Of a stretch of 64,000 nucleotides of DNA, positions 5,060-28,924 are shown one piece after another. The DNA lies in contig NW_003314263.1 in NCBI RefSeq assembly GCF_000143415.4, positions 2,730,041 through 2,794,040 on the forward strand, read 5' to 3'. The position numbers and the translations under genes were made by a program. The notes below the pieces were generated by a model. The model was not told where the DNA came from and did not search any database. It worked only from the letters and a program-made list of their open reading frames with translations. The first letter of the stretch is position 1; each line of letters starts with the position of its first letter. Source of the DNA: Selaginella moellendorffii (lineage: Eukaryota > Plantae > Lycopodiophyta).

Positions 5060-6005
5060 ATATACTACGCGCTTCTCGAAGAACGTAGATGTCGAGGATC
5101 TCTCCTGAAGTTCGCGATAAATAAGCTCTCTCTCGCAATACTGCCTCTCGGGACAATCAAGGCAATAGGAGCCCGCACAGGGAGCTCGCCTGAAACACGA
5201 GCTACATCAGTAAGTCAAGCTGAGGCTCTCGTCAAGCTCGTCGGTGACGTAAACTACGCGGAGAAAACGTCGCAGATTGGTGTCAAATCCAAGCTCCAGT
5301 GACGACGATTCCAAATGGGAATGGACAAGACTGCCAAGCTCGAGTGTGGTCCAGAGTCCGGCCTAGCTAAACAGTTTCGAGTGTCAAGGCTGACAGAGAT
5401 GAAAAGGACGCAGCAGGAGATAAATTCTCACGACTGGGAATAGCGAACGCAGCGGGGAAAAGAAAACGCCACTAGAGACGGAAGAGGGACGACAGGACAA
5501 GACGAGCAGCAGGGTGGCGGAAGAGGATGGTCTCCATAATGGCTCACAACGACGGAGATGGACACTGGCAACTTTGGAGCGAGGCTATGGCTGGCAGAAT
5601 GCACGAGGGAGCTCTGGAGCGGTGGCAGCGGCCTGGGAGGACGAGGACGAGAAGGCGAACACTATCACACCTAAAGCGATGAAGCATCAGGACACGAGAA
5701 AGAAACGAAAGACCTGTGAGGAGGAGGAAGATCCACTCGACGCTTTTACTGCGGTCCGGGAGGAAGTGGAGCTGGCGTCCCTGTGTACTGCTGAAAACGG
5801 CCGCATTAATCAGGAGAGGGCGAGCTCGCAAGTACCTACGTGGTGGTGGCAACTCTCCTGGCGGTGGTAAAAGCAGCGACGAGGAGTGTCGTCACGAGAA
5901 GGCTGTGGCGTCTTTCAGAGCCTGCTTTGTGAATGGCGAGCTCCAGACAGTCGGGCCTGAGCTGTTTGACTGCCATCCAGAGAGAAATCCGTGTGCTGAA
6001 GCGCG
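5060..6005 (+). pseudogene. Inverted, degenerate duplicate of the LAS1 last exon
   Basis: 5215-5275 (gtcaagctgaggctctcgtcaagctcgtcggtgacgt...gagaaaacgtcgcag) is the reverse complement of about 968-1030. EEDGLHNGSQRRRWTLA and EEEEDPL recur, with many indels. Confidence 0.9.
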
Positions 6006-6245
6006 ATGGCTCTCCCGTTTCGTCGTTATATAAGTGAGAGTCCCACCTGTGTATCTGTATACCACCTGTGCCTATTTGCAACCCCGACCAGAGTTTCCAT
6101 CTGTGGACGAGGACGAGAGCTTGCCTGTCCCCCACTAGCTACGTACCTCACGCTTCGTCTACACGAAACGAATGGAGAAAGCGAAAGCGAAATCCTCACA
6201 AACCACACCAGCTACGTGAACGACTTTGCGCGGGCGTCCTCCCGG

Positions 6246-8060
6246 TCAGCCGGAGCGTGACGCCGCGATAAGCTCGTCGCAGTCGATCCCCGTCGAGTCG
6301 ACCAAAGGGATCTCGTCGTTTTGATCCGAGAAGTGGTATTTCTGGCCTACCGCTCGCAGCAGCTGGTAGACTTCGTAGGAAGAAGGTCGCTCCTTTGGAT
6401 TCGCGGCAACGCACGAGATGGCTATCTTCAGAAACTGCATCTGCTCGGCGTCCACCTCGGCCCCTTTCAGCGAGCTCTGAATCACGCTCCCAAGTGTGCC
6501 GTTCTGGGACTGCATTCCCACCCAGTCGACGAGATTCCCCCGGAAACCATCCTCAGACACCACCTCCACAGGCTTTTGGCCGGTTGTCAGCTGGAGCAAC
6601 ACCACGCCGAAGCTGTATACGTCTCCTCTCGTGGTCGCCACCAAGGTCCTCAAATACTCGGGCGCTACGTGCCCGACGTCTCCGAAGTCTCCATTGACAA
6701 ACGTGCTGATGTGGGTGTCAACCGGGTTCATGAGGCGGGCGAGGCCAAAGTCCGTGATCCTGGCCTCAAAGTCCTCGTCGAGCAAAATGCTGCTAGCACT
6801 GATGTTCCGGTGGATGATCCTCGGGTTGCAGCTATGGTGGAGCCACGCCAACCCCCTGGCCGCTCCGACAGCCACCCGAAGCCTCTTGGGCCAGTCGAGC
6901 GTAAACTCCCCCGTCCCATGCAGCCAGTCTTTCAAGCTCCCATTCGGCATGTACTTGTAAACCAGCAGCTTCTCGGCGTCGGCGACGCAGTAGCCGAGCA
7001 AAGGCACCAAGTTGCGGTGCTTGAGCTTGCCGAGAATCTCCATCTCCGACTTGAACTGCTTATCCGCATGAGCCGAGAGCTTGAGCCTCTTGATCGCGAG
7101 CACGGACCCGTCCTGAAGCGTGGCCTTGTAGATCACACCTGTGCGGCCGGAGCCGATGACGTTCTCCGGCGAGAAGTCGTTGGTCGCGGCCATGAGGTCC
7201 GTCAGCTTCAACTTGGTAAGAGGCTTCTCGAACAGTGACACGGTCACCGACTGTGGAGCTCGGATCCTCTTGGCCCACTTGTGCTCGTCTCTTGCTCCTC
7301 CACCTTTGATGGGCCGGACTCTCACCGGGAAGAAGCAAATGAGAGCCACCGCCGCCCCCACGAGAGCTAAAACTCCGCCAGCCGCGATGCCCGCTATCAG
7401 TGCCGCGCTCGTCTTCTTCTTCCTAGAGCACTGGTTACGTAGAGGCTGACCGCACAGCCCTGGATTGCTGGCAAAGGCGCTAGACGGGAAGTTCCGGCCA
7501 AGGAAAGATGACGGAATTGGCCCCGAGAACTGGTTGTTGGAGACGTCAAACTTGGTGAGCCGCGGAAGAACTCCAACCTGTCCGGGAATGGGTCCCGAGA
7601 ATCTGTTATGGCTCAAGTCGAGATTGTTGAGATAGGTGCAATTGTTGAAGGAGGTATCGATGGATCCCGAGAAGGAATTTTCGTGAACGTCGAAACCCAC
7701 CAGGTATGGAAGAATGTTGCAAACGTTGGCTGGAATGCTGCCGCTGAGCTCGTTCTGTGAGAGATCGAGGGTCGTGAGGCTGGAGCACTTGTCCAGGCCT
7801 CGAGGAAATTCCCCCGTGAACCCGGATCCTGGAAGAGAGATGCCATACACTCTGGAATCGTTCGGGTGGAGGCAAGTGATCCCGGCGAAGTTGCAGATGT
7901 TAGACGTCGGCGGGAAGACCCACGAGTCGAGGAAGCGCATGGGATCCCTGAACGAGCTCTTGAACTCCCTGAGGCACTCGACGTCGCTCTGGCAAGAAAT
8001 TACCTCGAGAAGCAGCGCGATGACGAGAATGCTCGATAATCCGGCCCTGGCCGCCTCCAT
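6246..8060 (-). CDS. BIR1-like: BIR-type (LRR-Xa) LRR receptor-like kinase, probably catalytically inactive; intronless
   Basis: Signal peptide, DVECLREFK..DP cap, few LRRs, NPGLCG cap, TM, VSLFEKPLTKLKLTDLMAATNDFS juxtamembrane. Kinase has HRNISASS instead of HRDxKxxN and keeps DFGLARLMNPVDTHISTFVNG. First ATG (MEAARAG) at 8060. Confidence 0.9.
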   Translation of the reverse strand: MEAARAGLSSILVIALLLEVISCQSDVECLREFKSSFRDPMRFLDSWVFPPTSNICNFAGITCLHPNDSRVYGISLPGSGFTGEFPRGLDKCSSLTTLDLSQNELSGSIPANVCNILPYLVGFDVHENSFSGSIDTSFNNCTYLNNLDLSHNRFSGPIPGQVGVLPRLTKFDVSNNQFSGPIPSSFLGRNFPSSAFASNPGLCGQPLRNQCSRKKKTSAALIAGIAAGGVLALVGAAVALICFFPVRVRPIKGGGARDEHKWAKRIRAPQSVTVSLFEKPLTKLKLTDLMAATNDFSPENVIGSGRTGVIYKATLQDGSVLAIKRLKLSAHADKQFKSEMEILGKLKHRNLVPLLGYCVADAEKLLVYKYMPNGSLKDWLHGTGEFTLDWPKRLRVAVGAARGLAWLHHSCNPRIIHRNISASSILLDEDFEARITDFGLARLMNPVDTHISTFVNGDFGDVGHVAPEYLRTLVATTRGDVYSFGVVLLQLTTGQKPVEVVSEDGFRGNLVDWVGMQSQNGTLGSVIQSSLKGAEVDAEQMQFLKIAISCVAANPKERPSSYEVYQLLRAVGQKYHFSDQNDEIPLVDSTGIDCDELIAASRSG

Positions 8061-8424
8061 CGCCGCGAGATTCCAGGAGCTCGACCGATATTTCGAGGCG
8101 CTCGACACACCTTGATTTCTAGCGGGACCGCAGCAGCTCGCAATCCTATCCCGCTCGCCTCTCCCTAAAGCCCTAGCCCTGCCGCCTTCTCTCCCTTTGC
8201 ATTATCCTAGCGTGTGCTCTGGGGCCGCCATAGCCAATTCCATGAAAAATGCGCACGGACGGCCTAGATTGCGTTCTTCGGTCAAGGCTAGGAATCCACG
8301 GCAGGTGTTGCGCAATTTTCAACGGCGTGGATCTCACGTAGCAAAGTCTTTGGAAAACTCTGTCTGGTCAAAAAGGCGGGAGCGCCGTGATCGTTCCGCC
8401 ATGATCCTCCCTGGTGGTGTTGTG

Positions 8425-8440
8425 TTGACTTTTCTTGACT
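8425..8440. promoter_or_regulatory. Tandem W-boxes (TTGACT x2) upstream of the BIR-like gene
   Basis: ttgacttttcttgact about 370 bp upstream of the ATG; the same cassette recurs at 14693-14708 and inverted at 21711-21726. Confidence 0.5.
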
Positions 8441-8549
8441 GTGAGACTGGGGACTTTAAATATGGATCGTTGATTGGAGTTCAAATTTTTAAACAAAGAC
8501 TATTTTCAAACAAAGAGAGACATTTTCATAATCAGGTTCTTCTTGACTA

Positions 8550-9299
8550 TCATATGGCCAGAATCAAGCTCAAGACGATCAAGAAGCTAGACAAACTGGA
8601 GAATATGAGAATTGGAGAGGACCCTCGGATAGCCTCCAGCACCTCGGATTGCCAGCTCCTGCGTGGGCATTCGTTACGTAGAGGCTGACCGCACAGTACT
8701 GGATTGCTGGCGAAGACGCTAGAGTCAAACGTGGTTAAAGATGATGGAATTGGCCCCGAGAACTGGTTGTTGGAGACGTCAAACTTGGTTAGCCGCGGAA
8801 GAACTCCAATCTGTCCGGGAATGGGTCCCGAGAATCTGTTCTCGCTCAGGTCGAGATTGTTGAGATAGGTGCAATTGTTGAAGGAGGTATCGATGGATCC
8901 CGAGAAGGAATTCTCGTGGATGTCGAAGGCCACCAGGTATGGAAGAATGCTGCAAACGTTGGGTGGAATGCTGCCGCTGAGCTCGTTCTGTGAGAGATCG
9001 AGGTACGTGAGGCTGGAGCACTTGTCCAGGCCTCGAGGAAATTCCCCCGTGAACCCGGATGCTGGCAGAGAGATGCTATACACACTGGAATCGTTCGGGT
9101 GGAGGCAAGTGATCCCGGCGAAGTTGCAGATGTTAGATGTCGGCGGGAAGACCCACGAGTCGAGGAAGCGCATGGGATCCCCGAACGAGCTCTTGAACTC
9201 CCTGAGGCACTCGACGTCGCTCCAGCAGGAAATTCTCTGGAGAAAAAGAGTTGTCAATACGAGAAGAACTCTTACAAATCCAAGCTCCATTGCTCGCAT
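8550..9299 (-). CDS. Kinase-less BIR-type LRR ectodomain protein with C-terminal hydrophobic tail (RLP / possible GPI anchor)
   Basis: Intact 249-aa ORF. The LRR core is nearly identical to the BIR gene ectodomain, then diverges after CGQPLRNEC into ...GSSPILIFSSLSSFLIVLSLILAI-stop. Confidence 0.85.
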   Translation of the reverse strand: MRAMELGFVRVLLVLTTLFLQRISCWSDVECLREFKSSFGDPMRFLDSWVFPPTSNICNFAGITCLHPNDSSVYSISLPASGFTGEFPRGLDKCSSLTYLDLSQNELSGSIPPNVCSILPYLVAFDIHENSFSGSIDTSFNNCTYLNNLDLSENRFSGPIPGQIGVLPRLTKFDVSNNQFSGPIPSSLTTFDSSVFASNPVLCGQPLRNECPRRSWQSEVLEAIRGSSPILIFSSLSSFLIVLSLILAI

Positions 9300-10252
9300 A
9301 GGGGAATTTCAAATTTCGAGATTTTAAAAACCGTAGCAGTACACCTCTTAATAACATATTTCAAGGAGATCATTTGTTCTCCATTCTGCCTGCTGTTTTT
9401 ACTACTGGAGCTCTACAATTGAGTTTAATATTTATGCTGTGTATGTTCGGGTTGAATTCCACATTCAGAGTGAAGAGCGTTGATAGCACGCTAAGGATGA
9501 TTGTTTTAAAGCCCAACTAAAGCCTCCTCCTCCTCGACAGCTCCTCATTCCCTAGTGCCCTTAATCCTTGCTGCTCCAGTCTTTAAACAAAGTCAATCAT
9601 ATAATTTATTCTTATAAGCTGCTAGATCTGGAAGACATTCTTGTTAGCTTTTATTACAATATATTTTCATTCATTCATTCATACTATTTACAAGGTCTTG
9701 CAGCATGAGACCGGCAGATCAAATATGCCATAGTGACAATTGGTCATACCTGTTTGTCGTCTTCATCATGTTGTCATTCATTAAGGCTTTAGATGTTATT
9801 TTACTATATTCTAGTGATATCAATGCAAGGACTGAAGCCAGGTATTTTGCTAGTGAAGGAAGATCCTTCACTGACGTGGAGTCTAAGCTTGATTTATTGG
9901 ACAATTATGAGTTTGATTTTTAGAAGATATTTATATAATTTGTGAAATTGAATGAAATATTTTTATTAATAAATGACGCAATAAATATTTCCTAGATAAA
10001 AATTATAATATTATTTTATAAATTTAACTGTTTACAAAAGAAAAATTTATATATAAATTAATATTTTCAAATAATAATATTTATAACAAATTAATTTTTA
10101 AATCATAATAAAAATATTACATTATATTAAGATATTTAGATAATAAGTAAAGCAACAATAATATTTTATCTAAAGATTAAGACTCCTTTTGTTATTGTCT
10201 TTATCTATAGTGTCTACAGCTGATTCTCACTCTCTACTCAGGTAGTGTGGAG

Positions 10253-13200
10253 TGTCATATATTTGCTATCTTTTTGTATTTTTTTAAGGAGTATATTTAT
10301 TACTACTATTCATAATAAGAAGTGAACCCCAAACTTCTACTTATATGATTTAAACTCAAGATGAACCCATATCACCTTTTCAAAGTAGGGTTTTTAGGAT
10401 TTATACTTAGAGTACTTAATCTTTTCTCCTCCATTTTATTTGTAATTTTGTCGTCTCCCTTTCTCTCAACGATGAGCTATTGATAGTTTGAACATCTAAT
10501 ATCAACAGTTTTCAATCAGATCTCAATACTTTATAAAAATTAAATCAAATATTAGAGTATTCAATATAACACTTCACTTGTAGGTGTAATAAATTAGCAC
10601 TAACAACGGCTTCTTAGTTTAAAGCTAAATATTGGTATGACAACAATGTTTGATAGCGAGGGTCTAGTTATCAATATAAGTTGTCTAAGGAAAGAAAATA
10701 GGAAGGTTAATGCTCTTACTCAATACAATTATCTTGCATTTTCATCTTGTTCAACCTTTAACATTAAATTATCTTTGATCTCTTGTTTTTAAATTAACTC
10801 TCTTACACAATTCTCTATTCCTTTATCACTCCCTCTTAAACTATTAAACTATTTATTTAAAAGCTTAGCAATAGCTTTTTTGGGGTTTTATTAACCCAAC
10901 ATGGTGATTATCAATTTCTTCTATTTTGGGTTGGACTTATTTATCAATAAGTGCAATTGTATATAACTAAATGGCAAATAAAATTGTTTATTGTCCAAGC
11001 ATGCATGTTATAACATTTTTATATCTACAAAGCATTAAAAATGATCTAATGATAATTTTGTTAGCCCTATATGCACAAGTATATTGTATTTATGATATGC
11101 ATCAATGAACCAAAATGCCTCAATATGCTTTATTTTGTCTTCTCCAAAGACAAAATATTTGTCTTATTTTGTCTTTTCTTGCTTTAAGGTCTTTGAAATT
11201 TATTCCTTACTAATCTTTCACCTTTTTGTGGATTTGACAATATTCTTATTATGGCTAATTTATTTTCCAAAATAATATATTTCTTGCTATGTTACAATAG
11301 AATTAATGGAGACTAACTGGTTGAGCTTATTTATAAGAATATTTTTCAAGTTTATAAATTGTTATATAATGTTGTTAATGATTAAAGGCCTCAATTTATT
11401 TTTATTGTAAATAACTAAAGAGAATGACTCAAGAGACGATCCATAAAGGTTTAAATATAAAAGAAAAATGCCCATATACAAAAGTGAAGGAATTGAAATA
11501 CTTAAGGTTAAACATCATTGGGTTTAATAATGTCAAGAGCTAAATAATATCATAAGGGTTTTAAAGTTAAATATTATCATAGGTGTTGATTGGTGAAATG
11601 AATCACACTATATATTGAGATGTTATTAAATATTATTATAGAAGGCTTGGGTATAAATGTCCTTAGGTTTGAATATTACTGGGTTAAAGATGTTTAGACT
11701 TAAAAGCCCTATAATAATATTTAACTATTGAATTTTGAAGTTACCTAGGTTTGAATAAGAGAATCATACCATATATTGAGATTTCATTCAATATTATTAT
11801 AGGGGTTTTAGGTCTAATTTTGAATCATACCACATGTTGAGATTGACATCTTGGGAAAGTTGTGATTCTCATCTTCCATTCATAAAGGCTTGGTGGATTA
11901 TAAATATCTCAAGAGAACAATTCAAGAAATTATCCATAAAAGTCCTATTAATAAAAATGCACTTTATTTTACAATTAGTTAGTCTTGGGATAGTTGAGGT
12001 TAAGTGTTTTTGTGTTTACATAATACTAGGTTGAATTCAAGAACTTACATCCAGCTTTTGGCACTAGTTTCTTCCCTTTTTTCATATAAAAAACAAATTA
12101 AAATTTTAATATCCTTAAATTAATAGGAAATTAGAGCATACTATTTAAAGTCTTGAGTAATATCTTTGATGCTTTATTTTTCATAAATAAGATGATTGGG
12201 TTAATTTCCTTCCTGCAAATGAATTTACTTATAATAATTTTTAGCACTCTTCAACACATCATTTTCTATTTTTCATCTTCTATGGATCTTCATTGGTCAT
12301 ATTTATTTCCTTCAACATTTGATCTTATAAATAAATTTATTGCTTATGCAACTATCTTAGATTCTTTTAATGAAGAAATTTATCATCACCTTTTTCATGC
12401 TCATGTTATTTATTGCCATAGTGTTGATCATTCTTGACAACCTAATCCTTTTTATTTAATTGGATAAAATGTTTAAGTTTGTCATTATTTAAAAACCACA
12501 CACCATTATAATAAATATTTGGTGTTCTATAGTTTTTTGTTAGAACTTTATGCCCCTTTTAATCAAACTCGTATTCCACCATCACCTCCTCTAAAGGTTA
12601 TTGCTTGTGAGCAAGAGTTTGAGGTTGCTATCATACTTAACTCAAAGTATTAATACTACAAACTTTATTGTTTAGTCAACTTGCTTAGGTATTCTCGTAG
12701 CAATCATATTTGTGAACTTACTTCTCATCTTACTTATATTTCTAAATTTTTTATGAATTTCCATTGATGACATCCATGTAAGTCTACATTTCAATTGCTG
12801 CTTGGTGTTTGGCATTAAAGTGGGGATGGTGTCATATTTGCCAAGATTTGCTTTAAATACTCTAAATAGGAACTCTAGAAACTAATTTGATACAACTTTT
12901 AATTATCTTTCTGTATTTACTGAGGAGTTATATTCATTATTAATGACCATAGTTAGAAGTGAACCCCAAACCTTTAGTCATGAAATTTGAATTCAAGACT
13001 AGTATATATGTGGATGGGCATTGGGATTACTATAGACCCATACCTAAATTAGGTTTCTGAATTTATTTTCTCTATTATTTTAGTATTAATAGTTTTATCA
13101 TCTCCCCTCTTATTAATGACAAGCTTACAATATAAACAATCAAATGTTGCAAATATAACTTTAGGTATCAAAAGATACCTGTCAATCAATTATTTCAAAC

Positions 13201-13253
13201 ATTCTAATAGGATAATACCAATATTAATAAACTAAGTTTAGCATTTGTATCAA
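10253..13253 (+). mobile_element. Degenerate Ty3/gypsy chromovirus-type LTR retrotransposon remnant
   Basis: 5' LTR TGTCATA(10253)...TATGACA(10642). 3' LTR starts TGTCATA at 12830 after a PPT (aaagtggggatgg). Both LTRs share agaagtgaaccccaaac. Integrase relic GFDNILIMANLFSKIIYFL (about 11230) and chromodomain relic PPSPPLKVIACEQEFEVAIILNSK...LYCLVNLLRY...FH**HP (about 12577-12785). The 3' end is approximate. Confidence 0.75.
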
Positions 13254-14504
13254 TATAAAGAAAAAAATCTAAATGTCTATTTAGCCAAACTTACTTAACT
13301 TGGTTTGCTAATTTTCTTTTGCTTTGTCTTGGATTGACTTTGCAAGAACCCTTGTATATTGAGCAGTAATCCCTCAATTCACTATATAATAGTTTACTAT
13401 CAAGGACTCTTATATGTAATATTTTCTTGGTTTCATTAGCTATATATGGAAGGTGTCTAGATTTGTTAATTAAACATATCTATGAAATGTGGAGAGCCTT
13501 CTAAACATGATCCCAAGTCCTAATTTATTATTTAACACTATTTCATATTTAATAAGTTTTCAAACTTATTCTAAATATTATCTTATAAGATTAAGGTGAG
13601 GCTATTATATAAAAGGGGTTTATAGGGGGTTCCAAATATATAGTAAAAATAGTGGTTGAAAACATGACTAATTTAGTTTTTATTATGTCACTCTTTATTG
13701 TGTGTTTAACTTAAGTTTAAGCCCCAGCTCCATACCATATTGCTCAGTGGGGCCTTGTATTAAGCCATCAGTATATTAAATTATGCTAAACTTCTTTACA
13801 CCATTTTGCATATAAAGGCTGAATATAAAGTGTTTGTGATCAGTTTTTTTTATTTTATAACACAATAAGCATGGAGTTTGGCTCCAAATTCATGTGTTAT
13901 ACACCAAAGAGCAATGAGTGAATAAGAAAGAAGAAGCCACTCATTTAATGTGTCTTAAAGACAATAGCTGGATTTGCTAGTTGGGAGCCTAGGCATTTAG
14001 AGGAGCTATTGCAGTGCAACTAGGATTTAGAGCTAGGAGACTGTTCTCAAATTCTTCTACTACCAGGTGAGGCTGGTTTTCAAATCCTAGTGGAAGAGCC
14101 CCAGTAGGAGGCACAAAGAAGTTAATAAAAGAGCATGTCTAGGAATTTGGCAAATAATAAAAAGAAACAAAAAAAGAGAAGCGATAGAAAGAGAGGACCA
14201 AGTAAGCCAAGGAGAAGAAACTAAAACTTGAATCTTATACCTTGGAGAGCATTGTTAGAAGTACCTTTGCACCTTGTATCTACTCAAAGTTTGGAGTGAG
14301 GAGGAAGAGAAGGGGATGCATTGCCCAAGAGATGAAAATGTGATGGTAGTGAGTGTAGAATGGAAGGTGTTGAAAGTGGAACTGGTGCTCAGTCTGGACC
14401 TTTATCACCCATGCCCGTAGAAAGGATGTCTCTAGCTTGCTTCTAGAAAACTCAAGATTTGCCATGTTGTGTAGGAAGAGATGGTAGACATATTCACCAG
14501 AAGT

Positions 14505-14655
14505 ACTGAACGGGATGTCAAACTTGGTTAGCTGGGGAAGAACTCCAATCTGTCCGGAGAATCTGTTATGTCTTGAGTCTAGATTGTTGAAATAGGTGGA
14601 GGTATTGATGGATCCACGCAAGGTATGGAAGAATGCTGCAAACATTGGGTGGAAT
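14505..14655 (-). pseudogene. BIR-type LRR fragment
   Basis: IPPNVCSILPYL / TYFNNLDSRHNRFSGQIGVLPQLTKFD, with deletions. Confidence 0.8.
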
Positions 14656-14787
14656 GCCGTGCCGTGATCTTTCCGCCATTGGTGGTGTGGTGTTGACTTT
14701 TCTTGACTGTGAAACCATAAACAATTTTAAAATATTAACAAATCTCAAAATTAAATGTAAACAATTTTAAATAATACTAAATCGAGT

Positions 14788-15402
14788 TATGGCCTGAGTC
14801 AAGCTCGAGACGACCAAGAAGCTAGATACACTCGAGAATATGAATACTGGAGAGGGGCATCGGATAACCTCCAGCAGCCAGCTCGGGCAGTTGTTACGTA
14901 GAGGCTGACCGCACAGCCCTAAGAGACGTTAAACTTGGTTAGCAGGGGAAGAACTTTAATCTGTCCAGGGATGGGTCCCGAGAATCTGTTCTGGCTCAAG
15001 TCGAGATTGTTGAGATAGGTGCAACTGTTGAAGGAGTTATCGATGGATCCCGAGTGAAACCCAACGAGGTATGGAAGAATGTTGCAAAAGTTGGGTGGAA
15101 TGGCCCCGCTGAGCTCATTCTGTGAGAGGTCAAGAACCGTGAGGCTGGAGTACTTGTCCAGGCCTTGCGGAAATCCACCCGTGAGCCCGGATCCTGGCAG
15201 AGAGATGCCATAGACTCTGGAATCGTTCTCGTGGAGGCAAGTGATCCCGACGAAGTTGCAGATGCCAGACGTCAGCGTGAAGTGGATCCCTGACCGAGCT
15301 CTTGAACTCTCTGAGGCACTCAACAAATCTCTGGCAGGAAATTACCTCGAGAAACAGCTCGATGGCAATAATGCTCGAAAATCCGGCTCTTGCGGCTTCC
15401 AT
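14788..15402 (-). pseudogene. Frameshifted BIR-ectodomain (tailed type) pseudogene
   Basis: MEAARAGFSS...ECLREFKSSVRDP, frameshift, then ICNFVGITCLHENDSRVYGISLPG...LTKFNVS*. The tail region (14790-14880) is homologous to the tail of 8550-9299. Confidence 0.85.
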
Positions 15403-15594
15403 CTCGATCTAGGCGATCTAGCGGGTTAGCAGCCATTGCAGTCCCATGCTCCCTAGCAGTATCCAACGTATGTTCTGGTTCGCCAGAGCTAATTTCAAGA
15501 AATATGCGACGACCCAGATTGCGTTCTTCGGGTGTGGCGCATTTTTCGACGCATTATTTGACTGACTTTCATTTGTTGAATATATATATTTTTT

Positions 15595-15860
15595 TATCTA
15601 TGACCACAGTCAAGCTCCAGACGATCGAGAAGCGACAGTATGAAAATGAAAGAAAAAGGAGCCTTTAATCGTCTCCTCAAGCCAGGACGTAGCTTGGGAT
15701 TGTTTGCGAACGAGGAATTCCCGAAACGCCCTCCAATCATGCTGGAACTTCCCCCGAGAACTCGTTCGAGGAAATATTGAGCTTGGCAGCTGTCCAATCT
15801 CTTAATCTGGGATAGAGCCCGAGAATCTGTTGTGGCTCAAGTCGAGATTATTGAGAGATC
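15595..15860 (-). pseudogene. BIR-ectodomain 3' fragment
   Basis: LNNLDLSHNRFSG at about 15820-15857, FGNSSFANNP, and the hydrophobic tail relic SFIFILS. Confidence 0.7.
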
Positions 15861-15899
15861 TGCAGCTAGATGATATATTCATAGCAAGCCAGTTAGAAT

Positions 15900-16750
15900 A
15901 CGACTACTTCTTGCGTATCTTGAGAACCAATCCAAAATGATCGCTGGGCAAAACCGGAGCTTGAGAAACGATTTCTTCGTCTCCTTCTCAAACGTCAAGC
16001 CAGGAATCGGTTTCGTCCCGAGCATCTCACTGCTTTCCACCTCAAAGTCACGGAAATGGTAGAACACTCGATCCAAACGCTTCTGTAGTCTGCTTCCAGT
16101 GAGCATGAGATTGGCCTTTGCGTCGTAAATTAGCCCAGGCTGCAAAGACAAACACAAGGTGAATCAAACCTCTGCCATAAAAACGAGAGCAAAAGTTCTC
16201 ACCTCAGTTGTGTCCATGCGTCCATCCATCCATCCTCGAGAGGAGGCTGGCAGTCTAGCTTGTCGTCCCAGTTCATGTCTCCTCCAAAGACATTTGGCAG
16301 CGGCTTGAGCGTTGCGAGCGCCTCCTTCATCTGTGCAACGCGCTCGGCGCTAAACATCTGATCGAATTTCGGGGGCGCTGGACACGCACGAGTAGCTGCG
16401 TGATGTTGCCGCAATCGATGTCTGCCGGACAGAGCTCTCTTTCCATGATCGTGTTGTGGAAGGGATTGCGGTACTTGTCTATCGGCAGATTATTAGACTG
16501 AATGACTTCCTGTAAGGAAAGAAAGACCTGCCGTGAGGCTGATAAGCTCTCCGATAGTTTCCATTCTTCGCTCCAGCTCGAGATCCTCACGAAACCAGAC
16601 GCTGGATAAAGTTAAAATTTGTGCGCTCTGTCGTGAGGATTGCCCTGGTTTGTCAGGAGCCGCAGCTTGGATTTCCTTTCTTGGACAATGGCTGTGGCTC
16701 GTCCAGTTCTACCTCTTGGAGCTCGGCTCCAAAATCACCTCCTCCTACTG
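15900..16750 (-). pseudogene. TDP2 partial duplicate with internal deletions
   Basis: Near-identical to parts of 23930-25180 (PGLIYDAKAN, CPAPPKFDQMFSAERVAQM, FGGDMNWDDKLD, WFREDLELERRME). Confidence 0.9.
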
Positions 16751-17084
16751 TCACTGATATCTTTGATCACTACTTGACAAGCCCCCGACCCCCATGGGAC
16801 GAGCTCTTCAACTCTCTGAGGCATTTTAGCTGCCGTAATCCGGCCCAATCGACCGATATTTCGAGGTCATCTAGGCGCTCTATACACATTGCTCAGCAGC
16901 GCTTAGTTGATCGCAATCTCATCTTTCAGCGTGGTAATGGCTGGTGGTGTTCACTTTTCTTGACTGTGAGATTGGAACTTTAATTTACAAGAACTGAAAA
17001 TTGCGTGTAGCGTGGAGCAAGATTCTCAGCAACTCACAAAATACTTGATGTGTATTATCAAGAATTAACACTAAAGAATAATTT

Positions 17085-17802
17085 TCAAACGAAGTCAATC
17101 AAATAATAGAAGAGAGGTTTGGATGACATGTGCGATCTTGATCTGGCCAGAATGATGGTGGAGACGATCAAGAAGCTAGACATACTGGAAAATATGAAAA
17201 TGAAAGAGGAGCTTCGGATAGTCTCCGCAAGCCAACTCTGGGTCCTGCCGGTATAACATAGCTTGCGGAAACGTAGAGGCCCACCACACAGCCCTGGATT
17301 GCTGGCAAAGGACCTAGACGAAAAGTTCCGGCCAAAACTCGTGAAAGATGACGGAATTGTCCCAGTGAACTTGGAGGAGACGTCAAACTTGGTGAGCCGG
17401 GGAAGAACTCCAATCTGTCCGGGAATGGGTCCCGAGAATCTGTTGTGGCTCAAGTTGAGATTGTTGAGAAAGGTGCAATTGTTAAAGGAAGTCTCGACAG
17501 ATCCCGAGAAGGAATTGTTGTGGACGTCAAAGCTGATGAGGTATGGACTGCCGCAAATGTTGGAGGGAATGGTGCCGTTGAGCTTGTTATGTGGGAGGTC
17601 GAGAAACGCGAGGTTGGGGCACTTGTCCAGGCCTCGAGAAAATCCCACCTTGCCGGTGGGAAGATCCACGAGTCGAGGAAGTGCATGGGATCCTGATCGA
17701 GCTCTTGAACTCTTTGAGACACTCGACGTCGCTCTGGCAAGAAATTACCCCGAGGAGCAGCGCGACGAGCATGCTCGATAATCCGGCCCTCGCCACCTCC
17801 AT
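17085..17802 (-). pseudogene. Frameshifted BIR-ectodomain (tailed type) copy; inverted twin of 20712-21464
   Basis: MEVARAGLSSML...ECLKEFKSS, then a frameshift and deletion, then GLDKCPNLAFLDL...NPGLCGGPL...SSFIFIFSSMSSFLIVSTIILA. Confidence 0.85.
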
Positions 17803-20711
17803 CCTCGCAAAACTGTATTTCGACTTGCGGAATCACCGCAATGCTTTCTAGCATGTGTTCTGGTCCGCCATAGCCATCGATTGCGTGGGTCAAAACCAGG
17901 GAATTCGGATGTCACATAGTCTTGCCTGGAATATTGAAAAAATTCTACTTGATTTTTTGTCTACTTGCTCTGGGCGCGCGGACACTAGAATTTGAGGACT
18001 TGCTCTTGGCGTGCGGAAGCGCGAAGATTAGAATTCTGATTCTGTTTGTCTATTTGTTCAAACACAAAGGTCGTAGAAATGAGGAATTCTACGTTTTACC
18101 TAGCCGGGCTTTCTAGCGCCCTGATAGGATTAGAGACATGCAGCTGATTTTAAGTTCTCTGCTACCTTGCGAAAGAGGATCACAGTGTACAGATTGAAGG
18201 TGACCTGAAACGTTTTGATCAAAATCTTCTCAGTCGAATTCAGTGAGACTTTTTCGTAGCTTTTCAGCCATTCGTTATGACTAGAGTCATCAGCACGAAT
18301 GACCCAGACAAACCTTCCAGTTTGCTTGCGATTGACCGCACTGAGTTGAGCGCTACTCTAAGAAATTTTTGTAAGTCGTCTTTGTGCTTGGAAACATTGT
18401 CTTGGATCATATCGGAGAGGATTCATAAATGGATTCTTCGCCTCGTCCTCGCCATCCTAGAGGCTGCTCCGTAGGCACGAAGCCGGTCTTCTTGGGTACT
18501 AGCTCCCTCCCCAGCGATTCCTGGAACAAAACATTATTTTCTTCTTTTTAACTGTTCAACTCGAGCCGTTACAAACCTGAAGTGATATGGCTCTGTGAAC
18601 ATTGCAGTCACTTATGGCTCTATCACCATTGCAGTCTTCCTCTCGTCCAGGGCCAGGATTGCCTTGGTGATTTTAACATTGCCTCGTCTCCCCTGACAGG
18701 ATGTGCTAGTTATCTAGAACATCGGAATTATGAGCGCCCATACAAGGGCCGGACCTCCCGATCTGCTCTACCGGCTCGTAATCCTGGAGCGGCTTGGGAC
18801 CTGTTACCTCCTGAACCGTGCTCTGGACGTGCTTCTCGATTATAGCGCCAGCGCCTGCGTGAGGCTCTTCATGTCAGTGCCATTCCATGGATCTACCCGA
18901 TCGCGTCCGGTGCGATCTAGCATAGTATCAATGCAGCGACCCCGGCTGGGGCTTCGAGTTTGATCCACAGGGACCACAACAAAGAATAGGAGTAGCTGAG
19001 CCACAAACTCGACAGCCTACATAGCTCCCTCCAGTACGGATATGGAAGCTTTAGTCACGGCATCTTAGAGAGCAAACTCTTGATCGATCCAATTTTGCTC
19101 GTTTTCTCTCAGGTGACATGCCTTCTGAATGTGGTACTGCAATCAAGATAATAACGAACGAGGAGATGAGAGCTGCGCTTATGATTCTTGGCAATGTCTA
19201 GATGCTTGGGACGATTGTAGCATAGTTTCGTATCAATAAAAACAATCATAGTTTTCACCTTATCCAGACAAATGCATTTTTCACTAAATATATTTATTTT
19301 CAAGCTTGTTCAAACCATGTTTGTTCAAATTTAATTAAATATACAGTTTCATATTTGTGAGCATCCATTCTATTGAATTGTGTTGTGACTACATTGGCAT
19401 TAGGCCTTATGAAATGGTGAGGGTGGTAGATGGCATGGCATCGCCATCTAGAGCTGGAGTGAAGTTTCACACCAAAAAGCAGAGCTTGCTGGAGACGTTA
19501 CAAGTTGTAACAGTCAAATTTTTGACTGGTGGGAGAACTGCCACTGTGAATTCACGTTTGGAAAAATCAATTAAAAATTCTAATAGAGAAGTTTTACTAG
19601 AGATTTACTGAAACTTTGGCTAGAATTCTTATTTGTATGATCTGGACCAGGTCAGGCACCTCAAGCACCCCAAGCTTGGACTGGAGGTCCCACAGAATTA
19701 TGAATTGACCAGAAAGCCACGGGAGACGTTTTTTGCCTTAGAAGCCTTGAGCAGTCATACTCCTGCTGCTGCCATAGGGAATTCATATAAGCATATATAC
19801 ATAAGAGTGCACGCAAAAATACTTGACAATATTAGTTGAAAGTAATAATCACCACTATACAAATTTGTGATTTACGCCATAAATTTGTTGAGGGAGTTTA
19901 AAATGCGCTTACCTGGAAGATAGCTTCCTTGCAGCATAAATAGTGCGTATACCAAGTATGATTGCTCTGCCAGGTTGAAGTTGGCTTCATACTTTTTCTT
20001 ATAGTTTCCAAAGCCTTGCCTGATGATGAAGAAGTCATAGCCGTGGAGATGTGGTGAAAGCCACCCAAGGAACTTTTAAACTTGAAAAATGGAACGAGAG
20101 CTCAGATCATACCTTTGGCAGTAGCGTGCAGATAATTCTCCAAGGGGAGAGAAGATTACCTGGGTATTCTTTTCAATCTCCATTGCCACCTAGAGAACAC
20201 TTTAGTCTCAACACACTCGGCCCAGCGGCTAGAAAATCCTAGAAATCGAAGCGAGGAGGAAGCAGAACGGAGATTGAGTCCGATAGAGACGCCAAACTTT
20301 CGAGAATCGCCTTCAAGCGCATTCTCCGTCAGATCCAGCAATGAGATCCGAGCAGCCCAACCGTTGCCGCGGCCCAGCGCGAGACAGCTGGATCTATGAG
20401 CGGCATGAGATCCATGGTCCGCGCAATCCATCCAGCTGCCTCGCGCGTCCGCACGCCCAGAGCAAATCCTCAAATTCCAAAGAATTCTAGTGTCCGCGCG
20501 CCCAGAGCAAGTCCTCACCTTCAGTTGATGTTGCCGTGGAGGTCTAAACATTAGACAAAAAAATCAAGTAGAATTTTTTCAATATTCCACGGTCCGCATG
20601 CCGTTGAATTCCCGGTTTTGACCGAAGTACGCAATCGGTGGCCATGGCGGACCAGAACACATGCTAGAAAGCATTGCGGTGAATCCGCAGGTTGAAATAC
20701 AGTTTGCGAGG

Positions 20712-21464
20712 ATGGAGGTGGCGAGGGCCGGATTATCGAGCATGCTCGTCATCGCGCTGCTCCTCAAGGTAATTTCTTGCCAGAGCGACCTCGAGTGTCT
20801 CAAAGAGTTCAAGAGCTCAATCAGGGATCCCATGCACTTCCTCGACTCGTGGATCTTCCCACCGACGTTTAGCATCTGCAAGTTCGCCGGGATCTATTGC
20901 TTCCATGAGGATGAGGTCGTGTATAAAATCGATCTGCCAGGGCTCGGGCTCACGGGTGGATTTCCTCGAGGCCTGGACAAGTGCTCCAACCTCGCGTTTC
21001 TCGACCTCTCACATAATAAGCTCAACGGCACCATTCCCTCCAACATTTGCGGCATTCCATACCTCATCAGCTTTGACGTCCACAACAATTCCTTCTCGGG
21101 ATCTGTTGAGACTTCCTTTAACAATTGCACCTTTCTCAACAATCTCAACTTGAGCCACAACAGATTCTCGGGACCCATTCCCGGACAGATTGGAGTTCTT
21201 CCCCGGCTCACCAAGTTTGACGTCTCCTTCAACCAGTTCACTGGGACAATTCCGTCATCTTTCACGAGTTTTGGCCGGAACTTTTCGTCTAGGTCCTTTG
21301 CCAGCAATCCAGGGCTGTGTGGTGGGCCTCTACGTAAGCTATGTTATACCAAATGCTCAGGCAGGACCCGGAGTTGGCTTGCGGAGACTATCCGAAGCTC
21401 CTCTTTCATTTTCATATTTTCCAGTATGTCTCGTCTCCACCATCATTCTGGCCATATGATATAG
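20712..21464 (+). CDS. Kinase-less BIR-type LRR ectodomain protein with a frameshifted (shortened) hydrophobic tail
   Basis: Open ORF from MEVARAG (an upstream in-frame ATG exists at 20661) with signal peptide, full LRR core and NPGLCGGPL. It ends SSFIFIFSSMSRLHHHSGHMI because of an 11-nt deletion relative to the 17085 copy. Confidence 0.75.
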   Translation: MEVARAGLSSMLVIALLLKVISCQSDLECLKEFKSSIRDPMHFLDSWIFPPTFSICKFAGIYCFHEDEVVYKIDLPGLGLTGGFPRGLDKCSNLAFLDLSHNKLNGTIPSNICGIPYLISFDVHNNSFSGSVETSFNNCTFLNNLNLSHNRFSGPIPGQIGVLPRLTKFDVSFNQFTGTIPSSFTSFGRNFSSRSFASNPGLCGGPLRKLCYTKCSGRTRSWLAETIRSSSFIFIFSSMSRLHHHSGHMI

Positions 21465-21859
21465 TCAACAAGAATTTATAGGGCGAAGATCAAGATTCCG
21501 ATGTCATCCAAACCTCTCTTCTATTATTTGATTGACGTTGTTTCAAAATTATTCTTCCAGATTTGTAGTTTTACATATTTTGAAGTATGCTAATGCTTGA
21601 TAATACAATCAACCATCAAGTATTTTGTGAGTTGATGAGAATCTTGTCGCTCCACGCAATTTTCAAGGTTCATACTCACTGTACCTTGTAGATTAAAGTT
21701 CCAATCTCACAGTCAAGAAAAGTCAACACCATCAGCCACCAGACTTTTCCAACGACTTTGCTACGTGAAATCCACGCCGTTGAAAAATGCGCCACACCCA
21801 CTCTGGGCCGTCGGTGCGCATTTTTCAGAGTAGCGCTAAGAGTTCTGTCGCGCAAGGTG

Positions 21860-22240
21860 TGTAGAGCGCCTAGATGACCACGAAATATCGGTCGATGGGC
21901 CCGATTGTCGCAGCTAAAATGCCTCAGAGAGTTCAAGAGCTCGGTCCAGAAATCCGGGGGCTTGATCAAAGAGATCACAATAGGAGGAGGTGATTTTGGA
22001 GCCGAGCTCAAAGAGGTAGCAACAACGTATCTGGAAAGCCCGTGTCCAGCGCCCCCGAAATTCGATCAGATGTTTAGCGCCAGCGCGTTGTACAGATGAA
22101 GGAGGTGCTCGCAACGCTCAAGCCGCTGCCAAACGTTGTCTTTGGAGGAGACATGAACTGGGACGACAAGCTAGACGGCCAGCCTCCTCTCGAGGCTGGC
22201 TGGATGGACGCATGGACACAACTCAGCGCAAAGGAGGTGA
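21860..22240 (+). pseudogene. Chimeric BIR-leader/TDP2 fragment
   Basis: CLREFKSSV (BIR) runs in frame into KEITIGGG...ATTYLESPCPAPPKFDQMFSA (TDP2), followed by VVFGGDMNWDDKLDG. Confidence 0.8.
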
Positions 22241-23932
22241 GAAATTGGAAGCACCAAGGCAGTCCAGGCCCTGGACGAGAGGAAGACTGCAATGGTGACA
22301 GAGCCATAAGTGACTGCAATGTTCTCGGAGCCATATCACTCACTTGAGGGAACCCTGGTTTGTAACGGCTAAAGTTGAACAGTAATGTTTTGTTTCAGGA
22401 ATGGCTGGAGCTAGTACCCGAGAAGACCGGCTGAGCAGCCTCTAGGCTGGCGATGACGAGGCGAAGTATCCTCTTATGAATCCTCTCAGATATGATCCAA
22501 GACAATGTTTCCAAGCACAAAGACGACTTAAATTTTTTTCTTACAGATCAGTCTGAGTAGAACTCAACTCAGTGCGGTCAATCGCAAGTAAACTGGAAGG
22601 TTTGTCTAGGGTCATGCGTGCTGATGACTCTAATGGCTGAAATGCTAAGAAAAAGTCTCACTGAATTCGAGTGAGAAGATTTTGATCAGGTTCCTCAATC
22701 ATCTTCAACAACGAGTATGCACTGTACACTGTGATCCTCTTTGGCAAGGTAGCAGACAACTTCAAATCAGCTGCATGTCTTTAATTCTATCAGGGCGCAA
22801 GAACTTAAGCTCCTGAATTCCCGATTAGATCAAAGCCCGGCTAGGTATAAACCTCATTTCTAGGTGTGACTCCACCACCTTTGTGTTTGGACAAGTAGAC
22901 AAACAGAATCAGAATTCTAATCTCGCTAGCGCCCAGATACCCAGATCGGCTTGCGAGCAAATGAGACACGGAACAACTCTCACATTCCGCTCGTCTCAGG
23001 TGACTGGAACCTGCAAAGATAAAAGCGAAGGTCGCTGCTGGGCTCCATCCCAATCGCGATTTGAGCGGCCACCAAGACAGAGGGGGAAGAATTCATCCAA
23101 GCATGAAATCACTCGCTGAGACCAGACCTTGGCGACCGCTGGTTGGCCGGCGCACAACATCAATAAACTATTCCAAGACTTAGACGTCCGAGATGATCCA
23201 AGCTCAATCCTCGGGGAAAGTTCCAGCATTGATTGGCGCAAACAATCCCAAGCTACGTGAAAGCAAAGGCCCAGGCAAAGGCTTTTCAAGGCATTTTCAT
23301 GTTGTCTAGCGTCTCGAGCCATAGAGGCTGTTCTAAGAACGAGTTACCCTTCATCCGACGACTCTGATTGGCCAGATCCTGCGGCTCAATTGTTATACAA
23401 AAGCTGGATCTCAGATCCAGGGCCGTGAGGATCCACGCCTCGCAAAGTGGAATTTGAGGGGGGAATTTGCTCTTCTCCGGCCTGTAGACGTGAGGCTAGA
23501 AAATCCAAGAAACTGAAGCGGAACATCGATTGAGTCCCATAGACCCATAAGGTATAATCTGAACTTTTTCAAGTTTTAAGTTCCTTGAGTGGCTTTCACC
23601 ACAGATAGTTTGCTTCATCATCAGGCAAGGCTTTGGAAAAGAAAAATATGAAGCCAGCTTCAACTTTGCAGAGCACACAGGGTGCCCGACCTCGAGGCCG
23701 ATTTTGGGGTGGCAAAACTTCTCTAATTATTCGAATATTCCAAACTCGGGAATAAAGGTTATGAGTTTAAAGAAGTTTTTATCTCAACAAAAGGTACTAG
23801 ATTCTTAAAAAGTAATTTCACAATAATAATCCTCAGATTAAAATAAAATCTATTTTAAATCCTAAAGAGCACAAATCAAGAATATCCTTAGAATCCACTG
23901 ATTTGCAAATCAATGCATCCAAGGAATGCCGA

Positions 23933-25604
23933 CTACTTCTTGCGAATCTTGAGAACCAAACCAAAGTGATCGCTGGGCAAAACCGGGAGCTTGAGCAACG
24001 ATTTCTTCGTCTCCTTCTCAAACGTCAAGCCCGGAATCGGTTTCGTCCCGATCATCTCGATGCTTTCCACCTCAAAGTCGCGGAAATGGTAGAACACTCG
24101 ATCCAAACGCTTCTGTAGTCTGCTTCCAGTGAGCATGGGATTGGCCTTTGCGTCGTAAGTTAGACCAGGCTGCAAAGAACACACGGTGAATCAAAACTCT
24201 GCCATAAAAACGAGAGCAAAAGTTCTCACCTCCTTCGCGCGGAGTTGTGTCCATGCGTCCATCCAGCCATTCTCGAGAGGAGGCTGACCGTCTAGCTTGT
24301 CGTCCCAGTTCATGTCTCCTCCAAAGACAACGTTTGGCAGCGGCTTGAGCGTTGCGAGCGCCTCCTTCATCTGTGCAACGCGCTCGGCGCTAAACATCTG
24401 ATCGAATTTCGGTGGCGCTGGACACGGGCTTTCCAGATGCGTTGTTGCCACGACCAGCTGCGTGCTGTTGCCGCAATCGATGTCCGCCAGGCAGAGTTCT
24501 CTTCCCATGATCGTGTTGTGGAAGGGATTGCGGTAGAACTTGTCTATCGGTAGCTTGCTAAGCTGAAAAGGAGAAGATACGCACTTGAGACTAAGCAACA
24601 GAATGAACGCGAGCGAAAGCTTCACCTGAAGGCAAAAGTAAGCTCGCTTTGCCGCGAGCTCTGAGCTAACCGAGCATCTGTATCCACTCCACCAGTTCGA
24701 TCGCTGGAAAATAGCATAGATACTGGTAGTAACTTCCTGTGAAAATCACTTATCAGTAAGGAGATATATGAACCACCAAAGAAATACCTGGAAACATATG
24801 ACGTGAGGTTGGTGCTGTCTGATAAGCTCTCCGATCGCTTCCATTCTTCGCTCCAGCTCGAGATCCTCACGAAACCAGACGTTGTACGTCATAAAAACGA
24901 TACTGTCGCTGACAATGTTCTTGGAAGTGGAAGAAGTTGACACACCTAAAGAAGAAAAGCAGTGAAAGTTTGTAAACGATCAAGACCTCATACATACCAG
25001 CAGAAGAAGCTATGGAGTTCTTCCTCGACATTCTTTCCATATGGAGCTCGCGAAGGAGAGCGTTTGAGGACTGCCCTGGATTGACAGGAGCCGCGGCCTG
25101 GCCTTCCTCTTCCTCGGACGATGGCTGTGGCTCGTCCACTCTCTGCCTCTTGGAGCTCGGCTCCAAAATCACCTCCTCCTCTTTTGCCGTGATCTCTTTG
25201 GCCACTACCGGAGGGTCTTGATCCAGGGGCTTCTCAGTGTCACACATACCGCAGCGAGGCATCGATCCGGGGCTGAGAAACGTGCACGCCGGGCAGTTCC
25301 ACGAATCCAGACCCGGCATTTCACTCGCGGCCTCTTCCTTCCGCGGTTGCTCACAAACCGCGCACGCATCGCCGGCGCTGTTGAGAAGCGTGCATCGGCT
25401 GCAAGTCCATTCCATGACCGAAAGCGTCGGCCGCAAGGGAGCGATCGAGACGATCGCGAGCGGCGCAGGAGGCGGCGGCGGATCGCCAGATGTAGAGAAG
25501 GAAATGCTACACTTGCAGATCGATACCTTGCGCGATGGCGGTGGCGGCCATCCCCGGAGAAGAATGTGAAGAACCCTAAACCGCTTGAGCCCCAAACCCG
25601 CCAT
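23933..25604 (-). CDS. TDP2: Tyrosyl-DNA phosphodiesterase 2 (EEP family) with two N-terminal RanBP2-type zinc fingers
   Basis: WTCSRCTLLN...CAVC and WNCPACTFLS...CGMC zinc fingers; TYNVWFRED, VICFQ/E, ATTHLESP, FGGDMNW, RLDR and PSDHFG EEP motifs. Start is uncertain (MAGLG at 25604, or a downstream MEW). Confidence 0.9.
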
Positions 25605-28284: not shown

Positions 28285-28847
28285 TGTAAAATTTGTAAAT
28301 ATATAAATATGTATATACATGTATTACCTTGCCTAGGTAATACACAAATTATAGTACTAAAGCATATGGATTGTTAATTTGGGTGGTCCATTCATTCTTG
28401 TATATAAGCAAGGGTTTAAACAATAATTAATATATCTATTTCTATATTTTACACACTCACATCAATGGAAGTGAGACACACTAGAATTTGTTCTTGAAGG
28501 ACAAAGCTTTTTAATAATGCTTTGCTTTAGTATTTGGGATCTTGTTTTTTGTTTTCATTCATTTATTCTTTCTTAGATTTAAATCTATATTAGCCTTTTG
28601 CAAGATAACTTGTAGAATAAATTTTACAAATACTAATATTTTAAAATATTAATTGAATTATATATATATATATATAACTAAAAGATAGTAGAAATAAAAC
28701 CTTTTCTCACTTTCAAATAAGATGTTTCAAAGAACAGTTGACATATAAAATTCTAAATTTAAAATAGTAAAACATAAAAGTATATATATTTTATAAACTC
28801 TCCCATATATAGTTGTTAAAATAATTTTTATTACAAATTTCTAAATG

Positions 28848-28924
<77 letters not shown>

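Follow-up and report, generated by a model that had tools for sequence, protein, structure and literature searches.

The BIR proteins of Arabidopsis, which belong to subfamily Xa of the leucine-rich repeat (LRR) receptor-like kinases (RLKs), are pseudokinases that restrain SERK/BAK1 co-receptors through their ectodomains. We analyzed a window of 64,000 nucleotides (nt) of the spikemoss Selaginella moellendorffii (contig NW_003314263.1; scaffold GL377567.1, ~2.73-2.76 Mb), in which a complete BIR-type receptor gene, denoted A hereinafter, is accompanied by a series of kinase-less copies of its ectodomain (B to G), four of which (B, D, F and G) continue into a common tail. Gene A has the whole architecture of Arabidopsis BIR1-4 and, like them, a dead catalytic motif (HRN in A). 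The copies keep, as in BIR2 and BIR3, the five-LRR ectodomain with both caps and the residues aligned to the lateral patch, but differ from the Arabidopsis BIRs in that they are devoid of the native transmembrane helix, the juxtamembrane region and the pseudokinase domain, and carry an unrelated hydrophobic tail instead.

The general idea behind such copies is already known, both in the form of an RLK-derived, LRR-only paralogue (rice Xa21D) and in the form of a proposed decoy (RFO2, for PSY1R). Xa21D is a truncated, LRR-only member of the Xa21 receptor-kinase cluster, cited as an RLK gene that premature termination has turned into a gene resembling those of receptor-like proteins (RLPs) (PMC3662643). 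Like the spikemoss copies, it lies among the receptor-kinase genes of a local array as a paralogue that encodes the extracellular LRR part only. Xa21D is reportedly truncated by a transposon insertion, presumed to be secreted, and able to confer partial resistance; the spikemoss copies differ in that they derive from a duplication junction and have a hydrophobic tail, with no known phenotype or RNA. The LRRs of Arabidopsis RFO2/RLP2 closely resemble those of PSY1R, and such proteins have been proposed to act as PSY1R decoys (PMC3662643). RFO2 thus resembles the spikemoss copies in being kinase-less, in having the ectodomain of a signalling receptor, in its tandem, polymorphic locus and in its proposed decoy role, whereas its normal RLP C-terminal part, its expression and its role in resistance set it apart from the spikemoss copies. 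Animal decoy receptors, for example TRAIL-R3/DcR1 with its glycosylphosphatidylinositol (GPI) anchor, are membrane-tethered ectodomains without a signalling part. Here, too, a binding ectodomain devoid of the signalling part is encoded beside full-length relatives, but the fold and the kingdom are unrelated, so that this is an analogy only.

Anatomy of the array

Copies were identified by a tblastn search with A combined with a listing of open reading frames (ORFs). The kinase of A was never found within 8.5-21.5 kb of the window, whereas six ectodomain pieces are present there. The receptor, the copies and the associated segments are as follows (aa, amino acids; bp, base pairs; UTR, untranslated region).

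6246-8060, minus strand: A, BIR-type receptor pseudokinase, intact, single-exon, 604 aa from the ATG at 8060
8550-9299, minus strand: B, intact kinase-less copy, 249 aa (signal peptide 9299-~9225, BIR ectodomain ~9224-8668, new tail 8667-8553, stop codon 8552-8550)
14514-14636, minus strand: C, ectodomain fragment, LRR3-4 region (tblastn, 56-59% identity)
14788-15403, minus strand: D, broken copy, tail present
15784-15870, minus strand: E, short ectodomain fragment (tblastn; repeat family)
17085-17854, minus strand: F, broken copy, recent inverted duplicate of G
20712-21464, plus strand: G, open copy, 250 aa from the ATG at 20712 (267 aa from 20661)
8061-8549, minus strand: spacer between B and A, containing the 5'UTR and proximal promoter of A; part of a 1233-bp repeat unit
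21693-22019, plus strand: partial spacer and beginning of the next unit, left as a remnant 3' of G (blastn)
13049-17908, no strand: haplotype-specific segment, contains the decayed copies C, D, E and F

This inventory agrees with the initial annotation, which had listed one full receptor, one intact tailed copy, one open copy and at least four broken copies. The open copy, G, had been described there as having a shortened tail. Its frame is indeed open, but its tail is damaged rather than designed to be shorter, since an 11-nt deletion near 21430 (as seen against F and against G', a copy on the second haplotype) shifts the frame and removes the hydrophobic half. D has lost 23 nt near 15284, as well as 14 and 13 nt near 14920 and 14902, respectively, and has a gap of 18 nt near 15055. 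In F, a single nt is deleted near 17694 and 79 nt are deleted near 17653, and the stop codon is gone, so that the tail reads through.

The assignment of A to the BIR family (LRR-RLK subfamily Xa) follows from both its architecture and its kinase-like domain. The ATG at 8060 lies within an ORF of 620 aa (6246-8108, minus strand, opening codon GTG at 8108), in which LRRNT_2, LRR and Pkinase domains were identified (Pfam). A single chain comprises a signal peptide, the N-cap, five LRRs, the C-cap, one transmembrane helix and a cytoplasmic kinase-like domain, the top solved-structure match of which is the BIR2 kinase domain 4L68 (E = 1.4 × 10−105), and in which the catalytic HRD motif has degenerated to HRN. 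The nearest named relatives of A are proteins annotated as 'probably inactive LRR receptor-like kinase At5g48380' (BIR1-like; 50-58% identity), and no other Selaginella protein was found within the best 120 matches.

Homology between A and B ends directly after the C-terminal cap, at 7428 in A and at 8667 in B. From this point on, B has 37 further codons, closing with a 21-residue Ser-rich hydrophobic stretch and the stop codon, without any cytosolic residues. The same tail DNA follows the ectodomain at the same junction in D, F and G, so the junction arose once. The native transmembrane helix and the pseudokinase domain are absent from the tailed copies, the homology to A stopping at the tail junction. 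We rejected the possibility that the tail is a frameshifted form of the transmembrane segment of A because the likeness between the tail and the transmembrane and juxtamembrane DNA of A is at the level of shuffled sequence (local score of 14 vs. a shuffle mean of 14.6). An origin by capture from another protein found no support either: a search with the last 44 residues among 1.84 billion representative proteins retrieved only the query itself, although for such a short query this is a weak negative. Splicing of B to a downstream kinase exon was discarded as well: only 440 bp separate the stop codon of B from the start of the receptor, and there is no kinase homology, and hence no kinase exon, in between. 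The view of the initial annotation that the tail is unlike the BIR transmembrane segment and terminates the protein without a cytosolic part is thus upheld by the shuffle-level score and by the position of the stop codon.

The best 19-residue Kyte-Doolittle hydropathy of the B tail (2.55) is close to that of the transmembrane segment of A (2.52, transmembrane-grade), followed by the tails of F (2.25), G' (2.24), D (1.60) and G (0.79). The values are transmembrane-grade in B, G' and F; that of G is low because the 11-nt deletion frameshifts the tail. GPI-anchored proteins combine an N-terminal signal peptide with a C-terminal signal, in which small residues occupy the attachment site and a short spacer leads to a hydrophobic end that is not followed by cytosolic residues. 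Examined by eye, the C-terminus of B consists of R-G-S-S followed by PILIFSS and by 14 hydrophobic residues, and that of G' reads R-S-S-S and so on, which would be compatible with a putative GPI signal.

For structural comparison, we used the BIR2 ectodomain (6FG7), the BIR3-SERK1 and BIR3-SERK2 complexes (6FG8 and 6G3W, respectively) and the above BIR2 kinase domain. B was modelled with AlphaFold2 (AF2) from an alignment of 12 rows, giving a mean predicted local distance difference test (pLDDT) score of 85, with values >90 through most of the ectodomain, whereas the tail is modelled as two low-confidence helices. The top Foldseek matches of this model were BIR2 (6FG7) and BIR3 (6G3W_D and 6FG8_B), with target-normalised TM-scores of 0.92-0.95, a root-mean-square deviation of 1.1-1.2 Å and 41-44% identity; the SERKs rank behind at 0.89. 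In phmmer comparisons of the tailed copies with BIR3 and BIR2, E-values ranged from 5 × 10−45 to 2 × 10−42. On the strength of the model, the tailed copies are predicted to have a BIR-type ectodomain fold, and the architecture proposed earlier for them, namely, a signal peptide, a BIR-fold ectodomain and a terminal hydrophobic helix, is matched by the AF2 model and the Foldseek ranking.

The SERK-binding surface of BIR2 includes Trp73, Phe128, Phe152 and Arg176, the last three of which form the lateral patch, and either F152A or R176A disrupts the binding of SERK3 (Hohmann et al., bioRxiv 10.1101/257543). According to the alignment offsets and the 12-sequence alignment, these residues align to Leu66, Tyr121, Tyr145 and Arg169 in B. 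The arginine of the lateral patch is invariant in all 12 aligned sequences, and at the putative SERK-contact positions, A has the same residues as B, so that the copies would keep whatever SERK-binding capacity the parent has. The N-cap loop differs from that of BIR2: Trp73 is replaced by Leu in A and B, and by Phe in G, which also has Phe at the position of Tyr145. In the broken copy D, the position aligned to BIR2 Arg176 is occupied by Leu.

Tandem units, haplotypes and history of the array

The array is built from a repeat unit of 1233-1239 bp that consists of ectodomain, tail and spacer. Pieces of the spacer located 3' of the B tail (8304-8459) recur 3' of the tails of D, F and G, and a remnant of the start of the next unit is found 3' of both G and F; the one next to G (21693-22019) has blastn matches to 8304-8459 and 16709-16892, as well as a 27-nt match to the start of the ectodomain. 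F and G constitute a recent inverted duplication, with a core that is 96% identical (dS, the synonymous divergence, of 0.038). Inverted duplications also flank the array (5188-6002 vs. 164-1054, 72% identity; 22016-22246 vs. 24220-24451, 95% identity), so local segmental duplication extends beyond the BIR copies.

The second haplotype is represented by scaffold GL377609.1, the relevant piece of which (labelled L003) was read along the receptor coding strand. Four ORFs were identified in it:

G', 261 aa, intact tail
B1', 249 aa, intact
B2', 263 aa, intact
A', the receptor allele, 98.7% identical to A

L003 accordingly carries three intact tailed ORFs and one extra 1233-bp unit. It does not contain the window segment 13049-17908, across which megablast alignments jump from 17909 to 13048, and no copies were detected in L003 1850-8779 (tblastn). 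The array is, then, structurally polymorphic between the haplotypes, with the broken copies being absent from GL377609.1, an observation that is new here. B2' combines the upstream DNA, 5'UTR and N-terminus of A with the C-terminal half and tail of B, as expected from unequal crossing-over between A and B; its upstream 490 bp are the same as those of A except for a single 17-nt gap. In addition, residues 115-162 of A' are B-like, and the N-terminus of G' is of the A type, indicating frequent sequence exchange among the units. Birth-and-death evolution, which the initial annotation had surmised, is apparent from the shared junction, the tandem 1233-bp unit, the inverted duplication, and the difference between the haplotypes in the number and integrity of the copies.

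The base composition of the window is uneven, with AT-rich blocks at 10000-14000 (26-28% GC) and 28000-30000 (19.5% GC) compared to 45-58% GC elsewhere. The first of these blocks separates B from the decayed copies and is 84-91% identical between the haplotypes. Weak matches to the kinase domain of A (24-35% identity, tblastn) are scattered at 36022-36267 on the minus strand, and at 43406-44167, 46167-47006 and 49494-50243 on the plus strand.

The simplest history would involve a single partial tandem duplication of the spikemoss BIR receptor gene that took in its 5' region and its entire ectodomain, spanning from upstream of the receptor promoter to just past the ectodomain. The duplicate would have been joined to unrelated, formerly non-coding DNA, 35-40 codons of which happened to encode a Ser-rich hydrophobic helix followed by a stop codon; the tail, under this scenario, may be former promoter-distal DNA read in frame. 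This would have produced a new gene type, the product of which starts with a signal peptide, continues with a BIR ectodomain and ends in a hydrophobic tail, without any cytosolic part. Later copying probably involved unequal crossing-over of the 1233-bp unit and inverted segmental duplication, along with exchange with the parent gene, and the two haplotypes now differ in which copies have been gained, lost or broken. The intact copies (B, B1', B2' and G') appear to have been kept protein-coding for most of their history.

Reading frames, RNA and rival explanations

Pairwise ratios of non-synonymous to synonymous divergence (dN/dS) over the ectodomain range from 0.37 to 0.78. For whole ORFs, dN/dS is 0.31 for A vs. 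A' (p = 0.02), 0.43 for B vs. B1' (p = 0.012), 0.56 for B vs. G' (p = 0.0035), and 0.67 for G vs. G' (not significant). The maintenance of the reading frame is a stronger signal than dN/dS. The 149 substitutions that separate B from G' include no stop codon (simulated chance of 0.024), and each of the six gaps in their alignment has a length divisible by three, in contrast to the frame-breaking gaps of D, F and G (23, 14, 13, 1, 79 and 11 nt). Because G' is about equidistant from A (dS = 0.37) and B (dS = 0.40), recent repair by the parent fails to explain its integrity. Conversely, G and F gained at least three frame-breaking lesions within a dS of ~0.03-0.04, and comparison of these lesions with the integrity of G' suggests that the G-type stem was under constraint that was relaxed later. 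Signs of pseudogenization are present in D, F, C, E and the tail of G, whereas B, B1', B2' and G' have intact ORFs with in-frame gaps only and dN/dS values of 0.43-0.56; these ORFs have stayed open for longer than would be predicted under neutral decay.

Two raw, stranded RNA-seq runs, together with two sets of contigs, were mapped onto positions 5700-9900 at a likeness of at least 97%. The two stranded runs cover A at a depth of 10-45x on the expected strand, and the 5' end of the RNA lies at ~8207-8240, with depth falling to zero above ~8238 and one contig stopping at 8207, after which adapter follows. Of the 31 variant letters in the reads, 16 are alleles of A', so the second haplotype is expressed. 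The remaining 15, which are located at 5820-8106, occur in neither assembled haplotype and form a block in one contig set; the public RNA data labelled S. moellendorffii include either a third allele of the receptor or a genotype other than the reference. The RNA plants, then, were not purely of the reference genotype, and the relevant tissue or stimulus may be missing from the samples. On the strand of A, depth of 17-40x runs for at least 550 nt beyond its stop codon (window 5700-6245), and five reads contain a 52-nt intron (5788-5839, GT..AG on the minus strand) 3' of A; this transcribed stretch represents a long 3'UTR that contains an intron, or else a gene that abuts A.

B is already annotated as SELMODRAFT_404473 and XP_024516567.1. 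The former, a Joint Genome Institute (JGI) model of 233 aa, excises a 39-nt 'intron' from the signal peptide, for which there is no read or joint; the latter, a RefSeq model of 294 aa, splices the tail from 8596 to 8364, into the receptor promoter, again with no read support. We adopted neither structure. An antisense ORF of 163 aa runs across the spacer and the tail and is open on both haplotypes (8197-8688, plus strand; L003 10606-11097, minus strand); it was rejected as a real gene, since it matches no Pfam family and neither strand is covered by reads.

Several observations weigh against a function of the tailed copies. In the two runs and both contig sets, depth is zero at 8238-8660, a stretch made up of the spacer and the B-type tail (the latter assessed at 8520-8660), and at 9084-9900, which covers the N-terminus of B and the sequence upstream of it. 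As B, B1' and B2' do not differ in the coding DNA of the tail, the zero depth applies to all three. The only reads on B map to 8760-9083 and carry A-type letters at 8849, 9004 and 9005; they fit A', which is B-like in this stretch. Although B2' shares the upstream 490 bp of A, it leaves no tail reads. Across eight studies, the top 16 RNA-like runs hold only 0.18-0.20 of the sampled words of B, a fraction that equals its A-like part. A look-up of the exact products of B, G' and the JGI model retrieved no Logan contigs, but this is uninformative because the expressed gene A was likewise missed. The initial annotation had named a lack of transcripts as the sign that would count against its proposal, and this is what every RNA set examined shows for the B-type copies. 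Sequence comparison adds to these observations. Polarized counts of non-synonymous and synonymous changes (7/4 for A, 14/7 for B and 47/11 for the G stem) appear near neutral, the power being low and the changes too few to separate constraint from neutrality. Between the tails of B and G', 13 of the 84 bases differ, with only one synonymous change. The dS is 0.115 between A and B vs. 0.255 between A and G, which indicates that B exchanged sequence with A, so that the integrity of B is weak evidence; exchange with the expressed parent could hold the ectodomain ORFs open without any selection on the copies. Finally, loss-of-function forms (G, F and D) segregate.

These observations have to be weighed in light of two other explanations. 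The tailed copies might be unprocessed partial pseudogenes, that is, non-functional relics that arose as by-products of local segmental duplication, and we consider this a serious possibility, if somewhat short of an even chance. Under this explanation, the open copies would be young or would have had their ectodomains repaired by exchange with the selected parent, and the hydrophobic tail would be an accident of AT-rich promoter-distal DNA that happened to be in frame. The lack of detectable B-type RNA, the near-neutral substitution counts on the lineages and the preponderance of amino-acid-changing substitutions in the tail would all be as expected, as would the difference in copy number between the haplotypes, the damage in this haplotype (four of the seven copies broken, and a fifth with a frameshifted tail) and the mosaicism with A, which involves the B-like residues 115-162 of A', the A-type 5' end of B2' and the A-type N-terminus of G'. 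Recent repair, however, is incompatible with the dS values of G', which nevertheless contains no stop codon and in-frame gaps only, whereas its close relatives G and F gained their frame-breaking lesions within a dS of ~0.03-0.04. The tail, moreover, lies beyond repair by A and yet keeps its frame, stop position and hydrophobic character in both old lineages, and pairwise dN/dS is below 1 (p = 0.003-0.02).

The B-type units could also be parts of the receptor gene itself, either alternative promoters and first exons that skip one 1233-bp unit or promoter-distal regulatory DNA. This appears highly improbable. The RefSeq isoforms of A' do begin at the ATG of B2' and skip exactly one unit (L003 10001-13048), but spliced aligners yield such unit-skipping models in tandem repeats, and our read mapping gave no joint between units. 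Isoform X2 has the B-type Pro111, and 20-30% of the RNA reads have the corresponding letter (7730 C>G); given that 15 of the 31 variant letters are found in neither haplotype, however, a third receptor allele would explain Pro111. The A-like upstream region of B2' combined with the absence of tail reads would fit such an arrangement, which, on the other hand, leaves G, F and D, none of which has a receptor downstream, unaccounted for. Taken together, we estimate that the chances that the tailed family is, or recently was, protein-coding and functional are about even. What the locus contains is a real birth-and-death family, for which a decoy function is plausible but unproven, with the evidence on B-type RNA running against it.

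Kinase-less BIRs in other plants and their possible role

Ectodomain-only BIR genes are present in other plants as well. Our search identified a kinase-less BIR2/3-like protein of ~210 aa in at least eight Solanum species, which ends right after the C-cap (one record is annotated as 'putative ovule protein'); in one Solanum Logan contig, ~700 nt past the stop codon contain no remnant of a transmembrane segment or kinase. In Poaceae, we found a kinase-less BIR1-like protein of ~270 aa in at least six genera (Triticum, Aegilops, Avena, Hordeum, Lolium and Paspalum). Its hydrophobic, transmembrane-like segment resembles the BIR1-type transmembrane helix, as judged by eye only, and its short conserved end reads ...SERLRAYVVRI. 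Both forms share with the spikemoss copies a BIR ectodomain without a kinase, but have C-termini of their own that are non-homologous to the spikemoss tail, and the Solanum form, having no tail, would be secreted. Kinase-less BIRs thus appear to have arisen repeatedly and independently, and the spikemoss version is set apart by its non-homologous hydrophobic tail and its visible flux. No paper was found on these spikemoss genes (by identifier) or on kinase-less BIRs, including those of Solanum and grasses.

If a protein is made from the spikemoss copies, it may be held on the extracellular side of the plasma membrane, with either the tail or a GPI anchor substituted for the tail serving as the tether. 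Through its BIR surface, this protein could bind the ectodomains of SERK-type co-receptors in the absence of a pseudokinase, and SERK-bound copies would then compete with the full receptor and with ligand-binding receptors, thereby affecting signalling. That the function of the tailed copies consists in such SERK titration or decoying is conceivable but doubtful. Still more speculative, and in our estimate unlikely, is the broader notion that kinase-less BIRs are recurrent, convergent cell-surface antagonists or decoys of SERKs in land plants, with a de novo tail in the spikemoss (a GPI signal or a tail-less anchor), secretion in Solanum and anchoring by the transmembrane-like segment in grasses, and with the spikemoss copies subject to diversifying selection and presence/absence polymorphism, as would be expected for immune-related genes.

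The array illustrates how unequal crossing-over creates and destroys copies, and the locus as a whole illustrates how a gene type can be born, with a partial duplication providing a folded domain and read-through into non-coding DNA providing a membrane anchor. Should the copies be silent everywhere, they would represent a well-documented case of receptor-gene decay. The presence of kinase-less BIR genes in potato relatives and in cereals makes the question testable in tractable plants. If the decoy role is borne out, a membrane-tethered, ectodomain-only BIR would add a new level of regulation to almost all signalling by LRR receptors and, at the same time, offer a ready-made tool to damp it.

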